A DNA stretch of 64,000 nucleotides from Trichosphaerium sp. ATCC 40318 (GCA_038496445.1 JALMLS010000564.1:310001-374000); one strand, 5' to 3'. Positions 12,018-57,111 are shown, counted from the stretch's first letter. Made by a program: numbers and translations. The notes: generated from the sequence alone by a model not told the origin.

Positions 12018-14319
12018 CTACGACATTACTTTTGCCTTCTGTTTGGTCCTCTCCCTGTCAATGTACATGGCCTTTAAGGACAATGCTAATACGTAAACAG
12101 TTAGTAACGAAAGGTAACAAAAAAAACACAAATTATAAACCAAACGAACCTTTTGTCTTGTCAATGACTTGTTGGTAAATAGAGGATTGAGAGTTACCCA
12201 TGATAACGTTATTCTCTTGGGAGTCAATCTTGGCATCGAGTCTAGCATTTCTAAAACGGAAAAAAGTGAGTACACCGGGCAATGTCTCCGCACAAGCGAA
12301 ATGTCAAAAAAAACTGTTTTGTTTCATTTTTTTGTGCTTTTCTTTTTGGTTGTTGGACTCAGTCAGTAACGTAGATATCGACATGGCATCAATTCCGTCC
12401 GCCCGTTCGCAATGCATCATAGTCCAACAACCAAAAAAAAGAAACGAACAGTGGGTTTCTGTGACAGAAAAAAAAAGAAATCATACCTGATGAGGTTTAC
12501 AATCCATCTTTCAGCTTCATCCTTGTTCATGTTTAATTTTTCAGAAAGCATGCCAATATCAATACAACTGTGTATCTTACAGTACAACTCAAAAATGAGA
12601 AGTCTTGCGTTCTCGATGAAGTCTGTTTTGCATGTTTGCAAAAAGTAGTCTGTGTCGAGCAACTGTTCAAAGATGTGAGTAAATAGCAAGCGCGTAGATA
12701 AAGGTTTTTTTTTGTTTTGAAAAAACTCTACAAATACTCAGAACACTAGTTGTGCGTCATATAAACTCAGATGAGCTGGGTGTAATTCATCACGTAAAGC
12801 AAGGCTACAAAAAAGAAACACAAAAAAAATTCAAACAAAACAATTCTACGTAAAGTTTCGTTTTGTTGGGTTTTTTTTGTACCTCTTCACACTCCTTTAA
12901 CTTCTTTTGTGCTTCCTCAAAATCGAAGTTTACATAAAGAGCCGATACGAACTCAGTCAAAGGATCACTGTAGTTACGTTGTTCTTGTTTGATGACCTAA
13001 ACATTTCATGAGAAACCCAACGAACGAAATCAAGTTTTTTTTTTTTACCTCTACTAAGTTCTTCAAGAAGTTTCTTCTCTTTTTGTAAGTAACAACTGCA
13101 GCTGTCAAATACCGTAAGATATGTGGGCAAGCTGTTTGTATTGTGTTCAAATAGCGACTAAGATAACAGTTAAGCTGGTTTCAACAGCAAAATGAATTGA
13201 AACAAAAAATCAATATTTTGTTGTGAAAGAACTCTACAAAAATCAGAACACTAGTTGTGCGTCATATAAACTCAGATGAGCTGGGTGTAATTCGTCATGT
13301 AAGAAATAGACTTCAAAGATAAAAAATAATCGTTTTGAAAACAAATCAACTATCGACTACGGAAACTCGTTTCAAACAAAAAACATACCTGTCAGCAAAT
13401 AGCCATTCAACCATTGAAGTACGTCCCTCACGGGTGAGTACAAGTACAAATAAACTCCAGTGGATTAACCAAGTACGTTGGTGAAGTTGTTCAACAGGGC
13501 TGCTAAAGCTCTAAACAGATCAACGTTAGCATCTTTAAGCGTTATTTTCGTGTTTGAAAATGGTTTACCATTGAATCAACTACTGATCGCAAAGCTTCCA
13601 TTGCAGCTGTAGCGTGAGCTAATTTTTGAGTGTCTACGTCCTCACGATCAAGAACCAAAATGCTTGAGGCGAATTTTCCCCAAAGTACTGAAACAGACTC
13701 TTCACCGTCAGGTAGAAGCATGTGCAAGTAGTGGAGATACTTATTAAGCGTTTAGCGTGAGAAAATCATTCATGTCGTACATTGAAAGCTCTAGGGTAGT
13801 CTCCCGCTTGGAATAGCGCTTTGGCGAATACTTTAGTGTTCTCAGCGTCTTCAGCTGTAATCTAACGAAAGTTACATCGAAATTTTATTTAAAATGATAG
13901 TGTGCGGTGCGTACGTTCTCTGTTTTTAAGTGGGCAAGCGTAAAAGAGTTGGCATCGATCAAACGTTGTACTTCAGCGCTATCGTCGAATAATGTAACCA
14001 ACTTTTTGGCGTTCGTGAGGAGGTCATTTAAACGTGTTTTAACAGAACCAGCTCTATCCATCATCTCTACCAAAGGTTATTTTACAGATGCGTAATTATG
14101 AAAATAATAACCTTTTGGAGCCTCTTGGCCTGCATTTAACTCTTTAAACACCATTATGGCGTATTGCATAATATCGGTTTTTGTGAGCAGAGCGAGCTTC
14201 GCTTTTCCAATATCCTCACTTGGGTACAATGCTTTTGCTTCTAAATGAACAAGCAAAGGCAATACTAAATGCCTATCCAAGTATTGCCCCAGCGTTTTAG
14301 TGAGATCCCACTGCGCCAT
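12018..14319 (-). CDS. EIF3E: Translation initiation factor eIF3 subunit E (Int6), multi-exon
   Basis: '[23 protein letters not shown]', '[10 protein letters not shown]', '[12 protein letters not shown]', '[12 protein letters not shown]', '[20 protein letters not shown]', '[11 protein letters not shown]'. Confidence 0.97.
12355..12425 (-). ncRNA. Intronic box C/D snoRNA, U43/snR70-like (SSU rRNA Cm guide)
   Basis: The minus strand reads ATGATG(box C)...GAACGGGCGGA-CGGA(D')...CTGA(box D). It is enclosed by a long terminal stem (TTTTGGTTGTTGGACT/AGTCCAACAACCAAAA). ACGGGCGG is antisense to the conserved SSU CCGCCCGU motif, as in U43/snR70. Confidence 0.85.
12736..12796 (-). ncRNA. Intronic box C/D snoRNA, copy 1
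   Basis: Minus strand GTGATGA(C)-attacACCCAGCTCAt-CTGA(D')...ATGACG(C')...CTGA(D). The guide is complementary to the conserved LSU rRNA UGAGCUGGGU segment (yeast 25S Am2946/Cm2948 region). Confidence 0.85.
13241..13301 (-). ncRNA. Intronic box C/D snoRNA, copy 2 (near-identical paralogue)
   Basis: ~55-nt core identical to 12736-12796 except for the box C variant ATGACGA. It lies in a different eIF3e intron. Confidence 0.8.
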
Positions 14320-16494: not shown

Positions 16495-17666
16495 ATGCAG
16501 TTCGTTTACAATTATTTAAAAGACGAACTAAAAGTTTTTCTAACATGCATTACGTTTTTGACAAGAATACCTGGTCCTAAATGGGTGGGACACGATCCTG
16601 ACTATCTTGCAAGGAGTACACTGTATTTCCCAGTTTTAGGTACGGAGAAATGGCTCTATACACCTGTTTTACGCATAAGTAGGCGTGATTGTCGCTTTCT
16701 GGGGCTCTGCGTTTTATTTTATCGGTCATTTGGGTTGGTCGCCTCTTATAGGTGCATGTATGTGCACAGCATCTACAGTATGGCTCACAGGCGCTTTTCA
16801 TGAAGGTACACCAACTTTACACTGTTTTCTCAACTTTTATTGACATAAAATCAACAAGACGGTCTTGGAGACACTTGTGACGGATTCGGCGGTGGCTGGG
16901 GTAAAAAACAAATCTTGACCATCATGACAGATAGCAGACTTGGAACGTATGTTATTTTTTCAAGAAGCGTTACTGTTCCCAATTTGACAGTTTTTTATTG
17001 TTACGTTTAATATTAATCCTGTCCTCAGTTATGGTTGTATTGGTCTCTTACTTGTTGTAACTATGAAAATTCAAGCTTTAACTCATATGCCAAGTGCGTA
17101 ATCTCACTACCTATCAGTCAAGTACCTTTTTTCTTATATTTTACTTGACAGGTATTGACATGGCTATTCGTGCTTTGATAGCTGGACATGTCCTAGCCAG
17201 ATGGTGTTGTATTCCATTAATACATTTTTTGCCATATGCTGTGGAGGAAACAGATAAGGGAAGCTTCCTTAGGTAAATAGTATAGACTGGGTCTCTTTGC
17301 TAAACTTTTTTTTTTTGATTAGACGTTCATTCATGGGCTCCGCTACACCTTTGAGGATACTCCTCGTTTCCATTCAATCTGTAATATTTGTATCCCTTGC
17401 ACTACAAAATATACCTCAGATTATAGCAGTATTAGCAATGGCTGTATTCATAACAGTAGTTGCTAGATACTACTTTTATTCCGTATTACAAGGGTACAAA
17501 ACGAAATCAGATTTCACTTTCAAATCTAATTCTATGTAGTTTTACTGGGGACAATTTAGGAGCGTGCAACCAGATCGTTGAGCTTGCAACTTATATGGTT
17601 CTCACATTCTCTTGTTCACGCGCTATGAATACACTACAAGAGTATAACCTCATAACATACTTGTAA
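16495..17666 (+). CDS. cobS: Cobalamin synthase (adenosylcobinamide-GDP ribazoletransferase), multi-exon
   Basis: 'ITFLTRIP', 'LTGAFHE|[30 protein letters not shown]|YG', 'G|[14 protein letters not shown]', with multiple TM segments. Confidence 0.93.
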
Positions 17667-17845: not shown

Positions 17846-17916
17846 GAGCCAATGGTGTAACGGAAGCACATGGCATTGAAGGTGCTACGGTTCAGGTTCG
17901 ATTCCTGGTTGGCTCA
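17846..17916 (+). tRNA. tRNA with GAA anticodon (Phe), atypical body
   Basis: Cloverleaf: acceptor GAGCCAA/TTGGCTC+A73, D arm GTGT-AACGGAA-GCAC, anticodon arm TGGCA-TTGAAGG-TGCTA, 4-nt variable loop, T arm TCAGG-TTCGATT-CCTGG. Confidence 0.85.
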
Positions 17917-17924
17917 CATACTTA

Positions 17925-18010
17925 GCAGAGGTGCTCGAATTGGTTAATGAGGCTGTGTTCAGGACACAGTGTGGTAAAGCCACGTGTGGGTTCGAATCCC
18001 ATTCTCTGCA
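17925..18010 (+). tRNA. tRNA-Leu(CAG), class II
   Basis: Acceptor GCAGAGG/TCTCTGC+A73, anticodon arm CTGTG-TTCAGGA-CACAG, long variable arm GTGGT-AAA-GCCAC, T arm GTGGG-TTCGAAT-CCCAT. Confidence 0.9.
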
Positions 18011-26861: not shown

Positions 26862-27057
26862 AATGGTTGCAAAACAGTTGATACAAACAACGTTTAAAAA
26901 ATTGAAATGTTTTACAGTTTTATTGCATTCACAAATAAAATAACCGTAAAAACGCTTCTAGTGGCTCAGTGCGTAGAGATAAATGTCGTAATGTATTCTT
27001 AGGCATCTTGCTTGTCTGTACAAAAATATTTACATGAGGTCTTCGGTTATGAATCAA

Positions 27058-27605
27058 TTACTTTGCTGCGAACGATATACCGCAACCACATCCACTTCCC
27101 TCAGCGTTTGGATTGTCTACAATTTCAAAAAGTTGTCTTGACAGTTCTTCATGCCAGTTGAGTGTAGCGCCGCGTAGTTTAGGTAAAGATAAATCGTCTG
27201 TAATGACTTTTACTCCTTGTTCTTCCATGACACTATTAAATTGTAAACAAGCACTGTAGAGATAGTACGTACATGTCATTATCTTGGATGGCATTATCCT
27301 CCAAAGAAAATGAAGTTTGAAACCCGTAACAACCACCGGAATCTACTGTTACACGCAAGTATGTGTTTGGTTTCTGTTCTGAAAGCTGGTACTCTTTAAT
27401 GCGCTGAAAACGAAGTATAAGCGTCAAAAAAAATATTTCATGCTATACGTACGCTAACAACACTTTGATTAATTATTACAGGATGTTTGGACTCAGCAGA
27501 TGCAGTTTGCGTACAAAATGTTCTTTTGCGGTTAAAGGACTGCCCACGCGCGTTTACAGGTCTACGAGCAACGATGATGCGTCGTAACATGCTTGTTGAA
27601 TTCAT
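27058..27605 (-). CDS. ISCA2: Mitochondrial Fe-S cluster assembly A-type protein ISCA2/Isa2
   Basis: Arg-rich presequence, 'LRVTVDSGGCYGFQ', 'NPNAEGSGCGCGISF'. Confidence 0.92.
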
Positions 27606-27879
27606 GAAGTTTAAAAAGATTTTAAGTTCGGTTCAGTCATTTACCAAAGTACCGAGATCTCTATCTTTGCGTTGAAGTAGTCCTTCGAGGGCCATGATAA
27701 ATATTCGCTACAACTGAAAGCAAACTTTACAAGATAGCACGTGCTTGGCGGTACAAAAAACTACAACTGATGCTACACTGCAATTATGAAGCACAGCAGT
27801 TGCACAAAAAAAACAAATCAATAATAAACTAAAGGTTGGTACAGATGGTCATCTTAATTTAGTACAAGTGCCGGCAAAA

Positions 27880-29031
27880 TTACAACAATTTAGGAAATTG
27901 TCTACCTGCGACGTGACCACCTCGCAAAGATTTGTTTACATTACGCTCGAACTCTGCCATATTGTTCACCATTAAATCAGCAGCTTCTAAAATATAATAT
28001 TAGACAAGAACAGAGCTTTAAAAAGAAATAACAATATAAACAAAAAAAAAAAGCAACTTGCCTTTGTTGAGTGGATCATCTGGGTTAGGTTCAAGGAAGA
28101 GAGTCATCAAACCGAAAATAACAGAACCAAGAGTAAGCACAGGCTTCCAATCAGCACGGAGAATATTCAAGCATACAGCACCTTTGAGATCAATATTTGG
28201 GTGATATATCTGAGGGCAATAAGTAAAACAAAGCGCAAATATAGTCACATCAAAACATTTATAAAAAGCGTTTTCAGTTTTTCTTGTTATCAAAAATACG
28301 TACCAAAGTATCACATACGGCCTTAGGAGGATCGTATGGGTAGCTGTTGGGAACGCTCAACGAAAAGGTAAAAGTAGCATTCCTACACACAAAACATTAT
28401 TATTATTGCCATTCATAGATTCGCTTCTATCGGAATGCGATAGTGTAGAGCCCTTATGCCGTACTAGCGTTTAAATAATGCACGTACTTGTACAAACCTT
28501 CCGTAGGTTTAATACTAACCTTGAAGTTCATGAGGTTATTAGGGTCTGGGAACTCTGTTTTAACACCTGGCGTCGCGTCAACGTCCAGTTCAGAAATGTC
28601 TATGATCAGCAGTTAGTAGTGATAGCGTAGTGTAAAACATTGTAGATTGCGCATAATAAACAGCGTGTTTCGCTCAAAAAAAAACTAGTGTTCAAGATCT
28701 TTGAAAGAGTCTTGCTAATATTTAACAGAAAAACACTCGGTGAAGCGATGAGCGAGTTTTCAGGTTCAGAAGTGACAGTACCTTTCTGTGTTCTTAATTC
28801 AGCAGCATTTTGCCTGCTACGCTTGCCGCGACCCTTTCGGTTTTTGCGTAGTGAAAATACGTTCTCCTTAGACTTCTTTTTTCTGACCTCTTGTAGTTCC
28901 TTTGAACTTTGGCGTGTTATTTTAAATTCTCCCTCGCCCTTCTTTTCGACATCTGCTGGCTTGCTAGCATCATTAGCCTTGTTGGCTTCAGCCGCTTGCT
29001 TTGCTTGTTGGAGTTTTTTGAGCTTCAGCAT
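27880..29031 (-). CDS. UBC12: NEDD8-conjugating E2 Ubc12, multi-exon
   Basis: 'AAELRTQK|DISEL', '[10 protein letters not shown]', '[24 protein letters not shown]', '[12 protein letters not shown]'. Confidence 0.93.
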
Positions 29032-29324
29032 TGCTGGTGACTTGTTTGAATGCTTTGAATTATATGAATAAACGCAAGCTGTAAAAAACGTCTTAAGTCA
29101 CGGCCCCCACGCCACAACCTTCATTTATTTTAATTTAAAACCACCTCCTTTTGAATTAACGTGGAGTTGGCTTGGTCGTCGTACAAAGAAACATCACTCG
29201 GAGGTTTTGATGCATTCTACGTGAAGCCTTCTGTTTGCACCTTTCTCTGGATCCTAAAGTGCAATTACAGTTGTTTTTTTGATTAAAGACTTCCAGCGGC
29301 TTTATTCGGTTTTGGAAGGCCGTT

Positions 29325-31879
29325 ATGTCCAGGTACTTTCACGCTAGCGCCCTTCGGTTTTTAGGTTTTTTTTTTTAATTGTTGTTGGCGATATTATTGC
29401 TGCTGCTCATTACGATTAATTAACACCCCACAGCACCTTGGGGGTTAAGAAACAAAGGATTTATGATTATCACACTTTGGAGACGAGGGTTACTAAAGCA
29501 ACGCGATCATCAAATGTATGTTTTTGTCGGTATTATCCAACCTTATGCGCACGAAAATCGAACAACTTCGTTAAAAAAATAAGCCTGTTGGTACTTATTT
29601 CCGTTCCAGGACACTGCCAAACCTTCAAACAACAGAGATAGCTATCACAGCAGGAAGGAGAAGAAAAGTACAAGCCTTTCTACAAACCAAAACGACTTCT
29701 TTTTGGTGTACACTTTGTTTATAAAATCTCATTTTAGGTCACAAGCGACACAAATCCACAGACTCAAAGAAGAAACGGAAAGGTATAATCTTTTCCCCAT
29801 TCAAGAAGTCTACCAGTCGCGAATTTGTTTCACCCAATCGCATAGGCACGTTTACATTTTAAAACTTGATTTCCGCAATCTAACATCCATGTAAAGAACG
29901 TAGATCTATAGCTGATCCAACACAAAAAAAGAAAACGCCTAAAAAGCGCAAAGATAAGAAACAAGGTAAAAACGAATACAACGCTTGAAAAAGAAAAAGA
30001 TTGTTTTCAATTAACTCTTTTCTGTTTCTAGCGAAAAAAGAGAGTAGGAGTCACGATGGTCGTTATGATGATAGGAACAGGTCTTGGCATAAACAAGGCA
30101 GCTATATTCCTCATGCAAGCGCCAAAAATAAGGTTTGGAATGAATTCGATTTTTTTCATGATTTTTACATAAAACGCAAGAATCAATACAAAAACTCATG
30201 AAAATGTTAGAACCACTCAGCTGGTGGATCACCGCATATACTACAACAGAATCGTAATGATTCAAGGAAGCAAGGCGCTTGGGAGCACACAGATGTTGCA
30301 GCGTGGCATAAAACGTTTTCACGCACGCTGCAAGCACATGAAAGCTCAAGAGCTGCGGCTTCGCCACCTACAAGGGTTCGTTTAATACATGTAGTTACTT
30401 TCAATAGCTAATCGTTCGTTTTTATTGTAGGTGCCTATCACAATTCAACAAATAACCAAAGAGCGCTCGTTTGAAGGAGAATTATTTGAGTTTGTAGAAT
30501 CTCTAGATAACTGGAGAGAAGTAGGGCAATCAGTTGTACAATTAGCAGCTGAGGGTGGGGTAAGTACAGAATTTACTTTTACAATCAAGTTTTATTGTAA
30601 TGTGAACATAACTTTTTGTAGGAGAATACGTTACGCGTTTACAGGTATGTAGACGACTCATCGGATGATCTGTTACTTTTTTCCGAAACAAGCGTTGAAT
30701 TAGCGGCTGGTTTCGTCTTAGGTAAGCTTTTTCTTTCTCTTTTTTTTTGTTTCCATTTTTTTTTCTAATACTGTTATTAGACGAAGACCAAAAGGATTCA
30801 TTTGCTTGGTATGATAAAGCGCAACAAATATATGTAAATTTTTTGTTTTATAACTCAAAGGATTTTGAGTTTGTATGGTACGACTTTGACACTTTTGGAC
30901 GCATTAAACCCAAATTATTCCACCAACATTTATTACTAGGTCTGAATTGTCACGTATTCTACAATTTGCACAAAAAACAAACAACAAAAAAACAAAAGAT
31001 CGTAATAGTTATCCAGTACTAGATTCACCAGATAGACGGCTGTCTTTTGATGCTTCATCAAATAATAGTAATACAGCACAACACACTAGTGTTAGTCTAC
31101 CTGGTACACAAATTATTACAAGGCGTCAGAAAGACAACAAAAGAAGTCAGAAGCAAGGCAAAAACAACAAGAATGCACAACATGGTACTGATGCGGGTTT
31201 ACCGTCTATTGGCGAAGAGGGAGTAAGTACCTTGAGTGCTCCAAGTGATCAAGAAGAACCGTTTTTTACTCCATTTGCGGATGACGCAAGTAGTTCACAG
31301 ACTACATCAGGAGATTCTAAAAAAACAAGCGAGTACTCATCAAACGCGTACAAAGTACAACAACAGGTATCTGATGCTTCACGTACGTCTACGAGATCAT
31401 CAGCAGATCATACCCTTTATAATGAGCTTGGTTCATCGAGTTCAATGCAAAGTACTGGTTCACAGTCCCAGAGCATAGGTGGATACCCCTCACAACTCAG
31501 GCCTGTTCCTGAGAGTGAGCCTTTATTCGATTTAAACAAGTTTGGGATTACGAGAGCTACTTGGGATGATCAAGTTCAGAGCTATGCAGACTCTGGTATA
31601 CCTGTAGCGCCTTTTAGTGCTCTACAATCTAGTGATCCTCAAACATTTGTTATATTCTTAAACGCGATCGAAACAAAGTTAAAAGCAAGCCGAGAGGAGC
31701 AAGCAAGGCAAAAACTTGAACTACAAAAACAAACAAATAGCATGGACATGCTATGCAAGTATATTATGAGGGTTACTCGCTTAGAGTCCGAAAACAAGGA
31801 CTTAAAGTCTCAGTTGAAGCTCGCTAATGAGAAGTGTATGCGCTATGAAGACATGGTGACAAAGCTTGGTGAGTTGTAA
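29325..31879 (+). CDS. Hypothetical protein with Ser-rich region and C-terminal coiled coil, multi-exon (5' structure uncertain)
   Basis: Series of GT-AG-bounded exons ending in a ~310-codon open frame. No family recognised. Confidence 0.6.
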
Positions 31880-31968
31880 TTATTCTTGGGTGTTTTTTTT
31901 TATTGTAAACAGCTGTACCATACCATTAAAAAAATAAAGTAGAAAAAAACGATTTAGGAAACCTTTTG

Positions 31969-32700
31969 TTTATTTGATGGGCACTTGGTTGTTTTACAAA
32001 CGGTTTGACACGTAATGTGACAAGTGCCGCGCTGCAGTTGCGCCTTTGGTATGGGTGTTACAGGGTGTCATTCGGTGTAACTGAGGAAAAGGTCGTTCCA
32101 TTTTAATTGTGAGCTCCAAGGGAGTCCGAGGTGGCACTTGAACGATCAACGCAAAGAGCACTTACTCTACGCGTTTGCTGCTTATTAAGTGCTGCTCCTT
32201 GGAGCTCACAACCAACATAGAACTGCGCTTTCCTCCTTTGATAGCGGCGGCAAATCACCAATTGCAACTGCGAAAAGCCCAAGTAAAAAAACGGGAATAA
32301 CGAAATCGAATCGATCGTTTTCACGGCCACGTCGTTGTCACTAAGCAAGAGCTGTTAGGGTTGCGATTGTAACGATGATTGGTTGTTGCTGTGTCTGAAA
32401 GACTCAATTGACGTCAATAGCGCAAAGGAGTGCGTTGGACAAGCATACAGGTTTAATATTGCAAATAGTCTTGTGCTGCGGGCGCTCAAAGGCACTTCGA
32501 AGCGATAAAAGGGCAAGTGCTCATTGAGAAAAACGAAAGGGAAACGTACTTTGTTGATGACACCACAATGGCAATGACAAATTCAAGATTAGTCAGGCGA
32601 GTAATAAACTGCCAGCAGTAAAAAAAAATTTACAGCAAACTCTGTCAAAGCTATAAGATTGCCTTTCGAAATTGTGATATACAAACGACAATAGTTTTTT
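31969..32700 (-). ncRNA. ORF-less structured RNA locus (candidate telomerase RNA or novel lncRNA)
   Basis: Upstream CACGTG (~32714), downstream AATAAA (31969-31974), two intron-like GT-AG segments and no ATG-started ORF of note. It has a perfect 15-bp stem (32107-32121/32197-32211), further stems, and AACCCTAAC at 32354-32362. Confidence 0.5.
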
Positions 32701-32925
32701 TATGAAAAAAACCCACGTGACTTTGAAGCTAAACCACTTTTTACGTTACACTTCAACTTACCATATTGTTACGTTGCACATGTTGTTCGTGTTCAGATTT
32801 GTTTTAACTTTGGATTTGCCTTGCACGGTAGGCCAACAGCTTGTCATTTTGGCTAGAAAGCAGGTTTAACATAAAGATGTGATGTAGTTAGTAACTCAAA
32901 CGTTAACATACTCCTTGTTTTATTA

Positions 32926-33506
32926 CTATTGCTCTAGTACTTTATTGTAGTTTGACTGTGTATAAAAGACAACTCCTACAGCATGTATTAATGCATTTTT
33001 GTTGTCAAGGTGCACGCTATTAGCTATTTGAACAAAGTCATTGTATTCATAGAGCTTGTTTGCTGATATAAATCTCCCTGTCTTGTTATTTATCTCAGTC
33101 ATGACATCTCTCATGTGTATGGTACCAAAAGATCTCCTAAGGTCAAACACCTTGTAGTCTAGACGTGTAAACGGCCTGAAGGTTTCACAACCCCAAAACA
33201 CGGTTGCCGTAGCATAATATTCAGGACCATCTACATAAGCACTATCACTAGTTATAGCGAGTGCAACGTCTTGTAAACAACGAATACGTTCATTGTTTAC
33301 GTATTCTATTGCTTGTAGTACTACGTTGTCCACAGTTTCAGCATAACCACAATCCTTCCAATAGCAGCTATACTTGTGAGTGTTAGTTTCAATACAATGT
33401 GGGCCTATAGGCGTACGTAGAACTGTCTTTGTTGCGCTGGATAAGCAGTTGCAGTTAGCAATACTAGGAATGTAACCAATACGCATTCCCTAGCGTAGTG
33501 AAACAT
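32926..33506 (-). CDS. Secreted hypothetical protein (1 intron)
   Basis: Signal-peptide-like MFHYARECVLVTFLVLLTATA. A GTACG..AAG intron joins it in frame to YSCYWKDCG...VLEQ*. Confidence 0.65.
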
Positions 33507-33955: not shown

Positions 33956-35974
33956 ATGCGAATCGCATTGGTGTGCCTATTTTTTACCTGGGCTATTCAA
34001 ATAGCGCTGGTACATTGTCAGCGATTTGTCCGTGCTCCAGAATTCATTGTAGAAGACGTACCTCGCGTGAGAGGTACAATCAGTATAATATCATCTAAAT
34101 AAACCCTATAAGGTGACTCAATGTTCGGAGACAACCACAAAGCCACGCAATTTATTAAAAGCGGCGTTGTAGACTTAGAAAAGGGTATGTAATCAATGTC
34201 TAAATTAAAAAAGAACCTTGTCTTTTGATTTCTAATCTGCGCTGAAAGGAACCATTACACTTCCTTTGCATCTCGGACGCATGAAAAAGAAACGTGAGTA
34301 CGTATGGTACATACTCACTGAAGCAAACGACAAAGGTAACCAGAGAATTGCTTAAAGTAGAAAAAAACCGTTTCTTCACACGTGATATAGGCGCTGCTCA
34401 ATTACTTGGCATAAACCACTCAGTACGACTATCATACGCTGATGTTTCTAAAGGTGGGTATATAAAATCACGTTTCGTTGGATTTATAACTATACAAGGC
34501 GCCCGAAGAGCTTTTGTTAATAAACTAGGCGAGCTGATTTTTCAGTTTGGTTATGTTGATTTTTCACCAAAACATGAAGTCGTGGAAGGAAATGATAAAG
34601 TGTTTCCACCTAAAAAAGCAAAACCAGGTTCTATTGGTAAAAATGAGTACTCTCCTGTTGTGATTGTTTCCACCGGAGGTGCGTACAAAACGCAAATATG
34701 TAGTACCAAATTATTGGCTTTTTTTTTTGCGCCAATTCCACTTGATCAAAAAAAAAAAAAGGCAATAATTTGGTACCTACAGCGTTTGACTATTTCAATG
34801 TATCTGAAGCTCAATCGTTTGGAGGAAACAAAATTTATAACGCACCAATGATTGCATTCAATGTATCAGTTTCAGATCTCGTTTTTGAAGATGGAAAGAT
34901 TGACTACGAGTAAGATTGTGTTAACTTTGCTTAACCTTTTTTGTTTTTTCACAGAGGCCACGTGATTAAAAGTTTAAATTGTTAACGTATTGCGCTAAAC
35001 CTTTGTATAGTATTGTACATGATAGAGTAGTTGCAATTGATCCATATAAACGCACTGTGACATTGAAGTTGTCCCTTGGATTTGTTGATTCAGAGTATGT
35101 TAATTGCTTCTTGTCTATCACGATATTTTTTTGTTAAACTTATTTTTAAGGCCAGTTTATTATTTCAGTATGGATGCATCTGATCCTGGTATAGCTGCTC
35201 TAGAATCTGCAACACATGCACATGGATTGACAGAAATACCTGTTGGTAGAGAATTCCTTACTTTCAGGTATGAGTTTGCGTATCTCATGAGTATCTTGGA
35301 CTAATTCTGATGTCCAGTGCTACCACACCTTCTGTGCATTTCACCAATGGCCACGATAGCTTAGAGTCTCCTCACAGGTAACTTTTAAATAGATTTTAAT
35401 CGGCCCAACCTCCTCTTAGGCAGGGATACAACAGCGCTTTACGACAACAAGCTCGCATTCATAAAAAAGGTAGTAGCGAATCTTGTCCAAAGGGTGGTCA
35501 TTGCAGGTACAAGAAAGTGTCTTTCTGTTGAAATATTAACACCAAAAAAGTGTACTAAAAGATACCAATCCGATGCCAGTTTTCACGTCAATGCCGTGGA
35601 AGAGTATTTCGTATTCCCCTTTATCTGATGTATATCTTGCGGAGTGGACTGGTACTAACCTTTTTTTTTTTGAGCCTGCTTTGAAAATGAAGTTTTTTAA
35701 AGGACTTTCATTTTGAAGTACTCCTCTTTGTGCTTATTCTTTTACGTAGGAGAAGCCGTCAAGAAAGGTCACCGCGCTCGTTTATTGGCGTATTCAACTA
35801 TAGAAAATTTTGTGGAGCAAGGGTGCGTCGAATTTTATCAAAAAAAGAAAATTACTAGTTGAGCAAACAGTGACATTGTTTTTTTTTTTCAGATTATTGA
35901 CTGGCCCTCTTGGCGGTGACTTTGGCTCTGGAAAGATAATATTAAATTCACCAATCGCGTACTCATTCGGTTGA
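33956..35974 (+). CDS. Secreted protein resembling an uncharacterised bacterial family, multi-exon
   Basis: Signal peptide, then 'GTITLPLH.G', 'LGINHS.RLSYA', 'GYVDFSP', 'FPPK.AKPGSIG..EYSP', 'HDRVVAIDP', 'YFSMDAS..IAALE.ATHA', 'PLSDVYLAEWT', 'G.IILNSPI'. The resemblance is recalled, not searched. Confidence 0.7.
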
Positions 35975-56959: not shown

Positions 56960-57111
56960 AAGAGACATACAAGAAAGAAATGGGAGAAAAATATTTGGGT
57001 TTTTTATTTTTTTGTTGGTTTCGTTTAAGTTTTTTCTCTCATTGGTCGTGTACATTAAATAAAAGCCAGTGAGTCTCCATGTAATCACTGTTTTGTCTTT
57101 TCCTCATCTTG

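Follow-up and report, generated by a model that had tools for sequence, protein, structure and literature searches.

A candidate hairpin small-RNA precursor in a GC-rich locus without a long open reading frame of Trichosphaerium sp. ATCC 40318

Which product, if any, is encoded by a GC-rich slot that carries no open reading frame (ORF) of notable length? This question is raised by positions 31969-32720 of a 64,000-nt stretch of DNA from Trichosphaerium sp. ATCC 40318 (GCA_038496445.1, JALMLS010000564.1:310001-374000; hereafter the window), where a candidate non-coding unit of the minus strand lies between the 3' ends of two orphan ORFs converging on it (30947-31879 on the plus and 33486-32926 on the minus strand). 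Trichosphaerium, a marine amoeba, is a member of the Amoebozoa and belongs to the Tubulinea. In the initial annotation, the slot was taken for a candidate telomerase RNA gene or, more generally, for an ORF-less slot with a structured minus-strand RNA element. The general claim survives as a candidate, since a GC island without coding signal and the strongest fold within 64 kb coincide here. Based on the evidence presented below, the locus is tentatively proposed, with a rough probability of 0.35, to represent a species-specific hairpin small-RNA precursor located on a minus-strand non-coding RNA polymerase II transcript.

The only exceptional structure of the locus is a long imperfect hairpin at 32083-32235 (minus strand), forming a rod of approx. 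50 bp with a free energy of -69.1 kcal/mol. In comparison to shuffled sequences, z-scores of -7.6 for the minus and -6.5 for the plus strand were obtained. Among 5110 sliding 150-nt windows of the 64 kb, the hairpin ranked first for stability, both for raw and for GC-corrected values (its energy per nt divided by the GC content of 0.48 gives approx. 0.9). The arms comprise 39 nt with 79% complementarity, and the hairpin is the longest of the three inverted repeats in 64 kb featuring arms of at least 14 nt within 300 nt. Its basal duplex is composed of a 3' arm (32103-32121) and a 5' arm (32197-32215), which enclose the perfect 15-bp core (32107-32121/32197-32211) already recognized in the initial annotation. 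In the minus-strand RNA, this core grows to 19 contiguous bp by the addition of two G·U and two A-U pairs, whereas both G·U positions turn into C·A mismatches if the plus strand is folded. Read on the minus strand, the basal stem consists of 7 bp, a 1x1 internal loop and the 19 contiguous bp, which together represent a 27-bp near-perfect duplex. The upper stem is irregular and built from GCACUU/AAGUGC and AACGCG/CGCGUU helices, the former of which had been described before and was confirmed on reading the sequence. The apical helix AACGCGUAGAG/CUCUUUGCGUU with its tip AGAG-UAAGUG-CUCU (32149-32175, minus strand) continues the rod without any junction. It contains the single G·U pair reported previously, but also one U·U mismatch, and closes with a loop of 6 nt, which the minimum-free-energy fold reduces to 4 nt. 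The inner 75 nt of the hairpin form one unbranched rod. Outward along the arms, complementarity falls off from 15/15 positions in the core to 16/24 thereafter. Eight arm positions deviate from Watson-Crick pairing. Four of these form G·U pairs on the minus strand, a single one does so on the plus strand, and three are mismatches; as a whole, they lean weakly to the minus strand.

The claim that the minus strand folds extensively holds for this element only. The entire 752 nt reached z-scores of -3.9 (minus) and -2.5 (plus) against shuffles, a signal that is caused by the one element at 32083-32235. The 485 nt at 32236-32720, with the template-like motif among them, are no more stable than shuffles (+0.2 and -0.7), and values of -1.6 (minus) and -1.1 (plus) were determined for 31969-32082. 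A small 3' hairpin at 31980-32028 (minus strand, z -1.5) includes the previously listed 8-bp stem GGCACUUG/CAAGUGCC (31980/32021), for which the genome has no second pair of this kind, and the long-range match GCAGUUGC/GCAACUGC is likewise present (32034/32264). However, perfect 8-bp complements outside the big hairpin amount to seven versus 4.6 expected, and 65 of 300 shuffles reach seven. Since such complements occur at chance level, neither the 3' stem nor the long-range match nor the template-boundary helix discussed further below was considered as evidence. A genome-wide scan for the pattern GGCACTTG...CAAGTGCC revealed no other such hairpin, the rest being chance matches. Furthermore, a small hairpin based on GCACUU/AAGUGC was located at 32485-32530 (minus strand; z -2.8 on both strands), inside a putative intron. 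Seven GCACTT/AAGTGC hexamers are clustered at 31981-32520, where three hairpins use them as stems and the apical tip is partly formed by them. Of the 39 copies in the window, 7 reside within 540 nt, with approx. 0.33 expected, which is no more than suggestive, the copies being complementary pairs and hence not independent of each other. The other two long inverted repeats of the window are located at 34703-34776 and 12340-12440; one features 26-nt arms of 96% complementarity with T10/A10 runs, the other 20-nt arms of 95%.

As stated in the initial annotation, the GC content of the slot exceeds that of its surroundings, with values of 0.46-0.47 (maximum 0.478) versus 0.33-0.39 in the flanks. 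When GC islands were defined by a GC content of at least 45% over 450 nt, five were found in the window, and 31969-32720 is the sole one among them without a long ORF, its longest open frame comprising 83 codons. The minus strand of the slot is rich in T and C, the plus strand shows a purine excess, and transcribed non-coding DNA of this genome seems T-rich on its sense strand, as deduced from a partial reading against mapped introns. The draft genome of Trichosphaerium sp. (JALMLS01) was reported to comprise 70.87 Mb with a GC content of 37.7% (PMC10521059). The intron-rich genome sequence searched in this analysis amounts to 70.3 Mb, and a DNA search of this whole genome identified the slot as single-copy.

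The absence of a credible ATG-initiated ORF was also confirmed, none of these frames exceeding 55 codons. The open frames of 83 and 75 codons scored below approx. 87-94% of true coding segments in two codon models, which were trained on 17 and 37 long frames and are weak (true-positive rate of 0.71 versus false-positive rate of 0.40). When searched singly, the frames of the locus yielded no Pfam match and, in a word search, no relative; a paralogue search of the genome with the longest frame returned nothing but this frame itself. For the 83-codon frame, there were no candidates among proteins called on transcripts, and exact look-ups returned nothing. Hand-built exon joins, namely the ATG at 32847 combined with GTAAGT at 32761, a GTACTA intron after the 186-aa ORF (33486-32926) and the plus-strand GTGCGT donor, were rejected, all of them running into stops. 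Within the limits of the weak codon model, the locus therefore appears not detectably coding.

Assignment to a known class of elements was likewise attempted. A repeat or miniature inverted-repeat transposable element was rejected, because the genome DNA search as well as the 15-mer and hairpin-pattern searches gave only the locus itself and chance matches; for the 15-mer of the core, no second inverted pair was found in the genome with one mismatch allowed. Rfam searches of the whole window at gathering scores detected tRNAs only, none of them at the locus, and the locus is not a tRNA. At E-values up to 10 in the segment 31700-33000, the hairpin resembles the family MIR1523 only weakly (24 bits versus a gathering score of 96). 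This match to a plant family is due to the hairpin shape only. Box C/D and H/ACA motifs were not found by eye, and snR42 gave a weak Rfam match (E 2.8). Metagenome pattern scans returned nothing. A small RNA gene of the small nuclear RNA (snRNA) type was also rejected, since the upstream element shared with U2 genes has no strict match here. This element, CCACAA-W-AAA, was derived from 12 U2 loci and precedes the start by approx. 55-60 nt; its one strict match in the window is located at 57018. The bare 8-nt core of the U2-type element occurs at 32562 (plus strand) as one of 14 in the window.

The signals originally cited for the boundaries of a transcription unit are present, but at background frequency. 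The CACGTG palindrome is found at 32714-32719. In the window, however, this hexamer occurs 31 times versus 10.5 expected (approx. three-fold), and it is thus a general feature of non-coding DNA in this genome and no specific evidence of a promoter. Its interpretation as a promoter mark was rejected, no difference from random positions being seen in the distance to the first ATG. One copy was observed 42 nt upstream of the ATG of an IscA-like gene, at 27738. The minus-strand AATAAA at 31969-31974 (TTTATT on the plus strand) is also present, but is at best a possible end signal in this organism: two conserved genes at 27000-29100 show no AATAAA after their stop codons.

Regarding splice signals, GTACGT is the donor consensus of this genome. 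It occurs 71 times in the window versus 24 expected (2.9-fold enrichment), for example at 32544-32549, 28298-28303 and 28482-28487. In the UBC12-like gene located at 27000-29100, two introns out of four begin with it. The hexamers GTACGC, GTGCGT and GCGCGT are enriched as well, and GTAAGT is not (ratio of 0.82). The UBC12-like gene also holds one GC-AG intron (GCAAGT). Of the two intron-like segments proposed for the slot, 32476-32549 begins with the consensus donor, but 32395-32448 does not. A single putative intron of 155 nt (32395-32549, minus strand), with the donor GTACGT at 32549-32544 and the acceptor TTTCAG at 32400-32395, would fit the local introns better than two short ones; intron lengths in the region are approx. 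75-170 nt. Within this putative intron, a perfect 10-bp palindrome, TTGACGTCAA, with a core of the cAMP response element (CRE) type, TGACGTCA, was noticed at 32408-32417.

Combining these observations, the following course of events is tentatively favored for a hairpin small-RNA precursor. A minus-strand RNA polymerase II transcript would start left of approx. 32720 and end near 31970, and it may drop one GTACGT...TTTCAG intron (32549-32395); the choice of the minus strand is supported by the one consensus GTACGT donor on this strand. Subsequently, an RNase III of the Dicer type would cut the long basal duplex into small RNAs of approx. 21 nt, which would then be loaded into the amoeba's Argonaute, as is the case for species-specific microRNAs (miRNAs) of other Amoebozoa. 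Piwi-domain exons were detected on C37, and paired (tandem) RNase III-domain matches on C23, C34 and C12, all of which are domain matches only. With respect to the criteria applied to miRNA genes, a single hairpin offers room for an unbranched duplex of approx. 21 nt that shows few mismatches, this hairpin is derived neither from a repeat or transposon nor from any other structured RNA, and the genome encodes domain matches for a Dicer-type enzyme and for Argonaute.

Amoebozoan miRNAs were described for all Amoebozoa examined and are mostly species-specific; their hairpins comprise 75-125 nt, with few exceeding 200 nt (PMC11014262). At 116-153 nt, the hairpin analyzed here lies inside the precursor range of this group. 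Compared with the miRNA genes of Dictyostelium, Physarum and Acanthamoeba (Edelbroek et al. 2024, PMC11014262; Liao et al. 2018, PMC6161686), hairpin size, lack of relatives and the near-perfect basal duplex are alike, and a Dicer-like enzyme, on which those miRNAs depend, is apparently encoded here, too. In contrast to these genes, irregularities are more pronounced in the upper part of this hairpin, and the locus is known from its sequence alone. Long fold-back or hairpin RNA (hpRNA) loci of the plant type, which are born from inverted duplications, offer a second comparison. As in these, the inverted duplication studied here is single-copy and looks young, its core being perfect and its flanks decaying; unlike in these, no gene of extended complementarity that could serve as parent or target was found in the Trichosphaerium genome. 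To our knowledge, Trichosphaerium, as a representative of the Tubulinea, has not been surveyed for miRNAs. If the hairpin is truly diced, it would represent a first candidate for a miRNA-like gene in this group and extend the finding of young, species-specific miRNAs in unicellular amoebae.

Several points weigh against a small-RNA precursor. No near-perfect target was found among the sites differing by at most one mismatch from the 15-nt core, and the best 21-nt sites have three mismatches, which corresponds to chance. The hairpin loses its regularity in the upper half. A perfect 15-bp core within arms of approx. 79% complementarity is not improbable by itself. Furthermore, the lean to the minus strand rests on five positions (binomial p approx. 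0.19). Moreover, strong folding was also observed for further segments of the window (z -4.6 and -5.3), one of them inside the neighboring ORF, so that local palindromes may be a mutational habit of this genome.

Nearly as likely as a small-RNA precursor, although itself doubtful, is functionless intergenic DNA containing a slowly decaying local inverted duplication, e.g., originating from replication template switching, the elevated GC content then being left over from an extinct exon or from the source of the duplication. The two strands are nearly equal in folding (z -7.6 versus -6.5), as would be the case for a DNA palindrome, the remainder of the locus resembles shuffles, and arm identity decays outward (15/15, then 16/24). 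Likewise, the searches yielded no promoter element, target or relatives, and the further strong local folds in the window, including the one inside an ORF, would be in line with an inert palindrome. Several points speak against such an origin: the strongest fold in 64 kb resides in the only ORF-less GC island, G·U outnumber A·C mismatches four to one on one strand, and the same stem hexamer is reused by three hairpins. Moreover, approx. 1 kb between convergent 3' ends seems long in comparison to two gene pairs. If the hairpin is merely a palindrome, the locus calls for caution, as the telomere-like 9-mer, CACGTG and AATAAA occur at background here and do not represent gene signals.

It is unlikely that the slot belongs to the long 3' untranslated region (UTR) or read-through tail of a neighbor (the minus-strand 186-aa ORF gene or the plus-strand coiled-coil gene), in which case the hairpin would be a structured UTR or termination element. 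The minus-strand ORF stops at 32926, approx. 200 nt upstream of the slot and on the same strand as the favored RNA, and an independent promoter motif was not found. In favor of such a tail, it may also be noted that AATAAA is not clearly the end signal in this genome and that, on the plus strand, an AATAAA at 32603-32608 is followed by an A-run. On the other hand, one AATAAA directly follows the stop of the 186-aa ORF (approx. 32919-32914), and another is located after the plus-strand gene (approx. 31934). The GC content of the slot is far higher than that of the flanking UTR-like DNA, and a UTR of approx. 950 nt would be long in view of the spacing of two genes read nearby.

An unannotated, fast-evolving protein gene with short spliced exons, or a dead copy of such a gene, on either strand is considered to be slightly more improbable still. 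GC content and plus-strand purine excess are exon-like, and a plus-strand frame at 32469-32618 has an average codon score and ends with TAA beside AATAAA. Plausible donors are available on both strands (GTGCGT at 32430, plus; GTACGT at 32549, minus). The neighbors of the slot are orphans as well: the plus-strand ORF at 30947-31879, a 310-aa exon with coiled-coil character, has no relatives in database searches, and the 186-aa ORF gave no match in a word search and one at 6e-4 among 1.84 billion representative proteins. Judging from these searches, both neighboring genes are orphans, and orphan genes are common in this region. On the other hand, all ATG-initiated frames are limited to at most 55 codons, the two longest frames score below most true coding segments under the weak codon model, simple hand-made exon joins meet stops, and the single frames are without Pfam match, relative or paralogue.

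That the locus is a telomerase RNA gene, with AACCCUAAC (32362-32354) as the template for TTAGGG and the hairpin as an activating domain similar to conserved regions 4/5 (CR4/5), is highly improbable. Equally little credit is given to its most elaborate form, a first amoebozoan telomerase RNA that would be made by polymerase II and spliced, AACCCUAAC serving as template and the hairpin as a junction-less, rod-like CR4/5 equivalent (eCR4/5), as in echinoderms and trypanosomes. The 9-mer (GTTAGGGTT on the plus strand, 32354-32362; template-like on the minus strand) does correspond to 1.5 copies of a TTAGGG template, and the human telomerase template ends in nine nucleotides identical to AACCCUAAC. 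Its frequency, however, is at chance level: two copies of this 9-mer were counted in the window versus 0.45 expected, telomere-type 9-mers in any register occur four times versus 1.9 expected, and 18 of 100 shuffles reach four. At approx. four such 9-mers per 64 kb, thousands of them would be expected in a genome of 70 Mb. The 165-240 nt around the motif are no more stable than shuffles (z +0.05 to +0.46), and the proposed boundary and long-range helices are at chance level. In particular, the template-boundary helix AAUCAUCG/UGGUGAUU does not appear in the minimum-free-energy fold, depends on two G·U pairs and is no longer than expected by chance. A pseudoknot was not found in the initial annotation either, and none is apparent in the sequence as read, no dedicated search having been made. 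Rfam telomerase families gave no match with E-values up to 10 in 31700-33000, and the genome-wide best match of RF00024 (E 0.87) is located elsewhere. We know of no described amoebozoan telomerase RNA, and curated models may therefore miss them.

Similarly, the resemblance of the hairpin tip to the vertebrate P6.1 stem did not hold. By definition, P6.1 comprises a 4-bp stem and a loop of 5 nt within the P5/P6/P6.1 three-way junction (PMC4993307). The tip carries an AGAG/CUCU stem, but as the top of a continuous rod outside any three-way junction and with a loop of 6 nt instead of 5 nt. In some lineages, eCR4/5 occurs without P6.1, so that the lack of P6.1 here weakens the telomerase reading rather than refuting it. 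Compared with fungal and vertebrate telomerase RNAs overall, the locus is alike in being non-coding and several hundred nt long, a size compatible with polymerase II telomerase RNAs, in having 9 nt complementary to 1.5 TTAGGG repeats and the 4-bp AGAG/CUCU stem, and in containing splice-like motifs. It is unlike them in that it features no three-way junction, a 6-nt loop, no supported boundary helix, no model match and no apparent pseudoknot. Moreover, the novelty that had been attributed to a spliced, polyadenylated telomerase RNA precursor is weak, since comparable maturation is known from fungi, where spliceosomal cleavage yields the mature telomerase RNA (PMC4993307) and one such RNA is processed from an mRNA precursor (PMC9564094).

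At the level of the genome, TTAGGG is plausible as the telomere repeat, given degenerate interstitial tracts on C427, C563 and C5 and at the end of C10. A search for (TTAGGG)4 in the genome returned three sites, all interstitial, and the 20 largest contigs carried no telomeric array at any of their 40 ends. The degenerate TTAGGG/CCCTAA tracts at C427:4504-7527 and C563:2458-5481, on small contigs, and at the end of C10 are short, occur in both orientations within AT-rich DNA and may be interstitial telomeric repeats of subtelomeric or element-borne origin. In addition, a weak match to the RNA-binding domain of TERT was obtained on C67. It is the sole match to PF12009 (C67:239879-240004, minus strand), scores 25.6 bits, just above the cut-off, includes an in-frame TAG and is probably one exon of TERT. 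The question of the telomerase RNA of Amoebozoa is not brought closer to a test by the locus studied here.

Further observations concern structured elements elsewhere in the window and the genome. The segment 33140-33310 (minus strand), within the 186-aa orphan ORF, folds with a z-score of -4.6 and contains a perfect 12-bp hairpin. At 17340-17540 (minus strand), a long rod of 200 nt was identified (-59.5 kcal/mol, z -5.3), which has no Rfam match at gathering scores and is located approx. 300 nt from a tRNA pair. This pair consists of tRNA-Phe(GAA) and tRNA-Leu(CAG) arranged in tandem at 17846-18010 (plus strand), only 7 nt apart, and may be dicistronic. A very long, near-pure poly-G/poly-C tract with occasional T, beginning at C145:71527 (minus strand) and giving approx. 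75,000 overlapping matches to a G-triplet pattern, is probably an assembly or sequencing artefact. Finally, at least 31 U2-like snRNA matches belonging to at least two sequence subfamilies were found in the genome; the upstream regions of the 12 U2 loci compared differ, yet share the CCACAA-W-AAA element, and several copies are clustered or inverted (C13, C169, C143).

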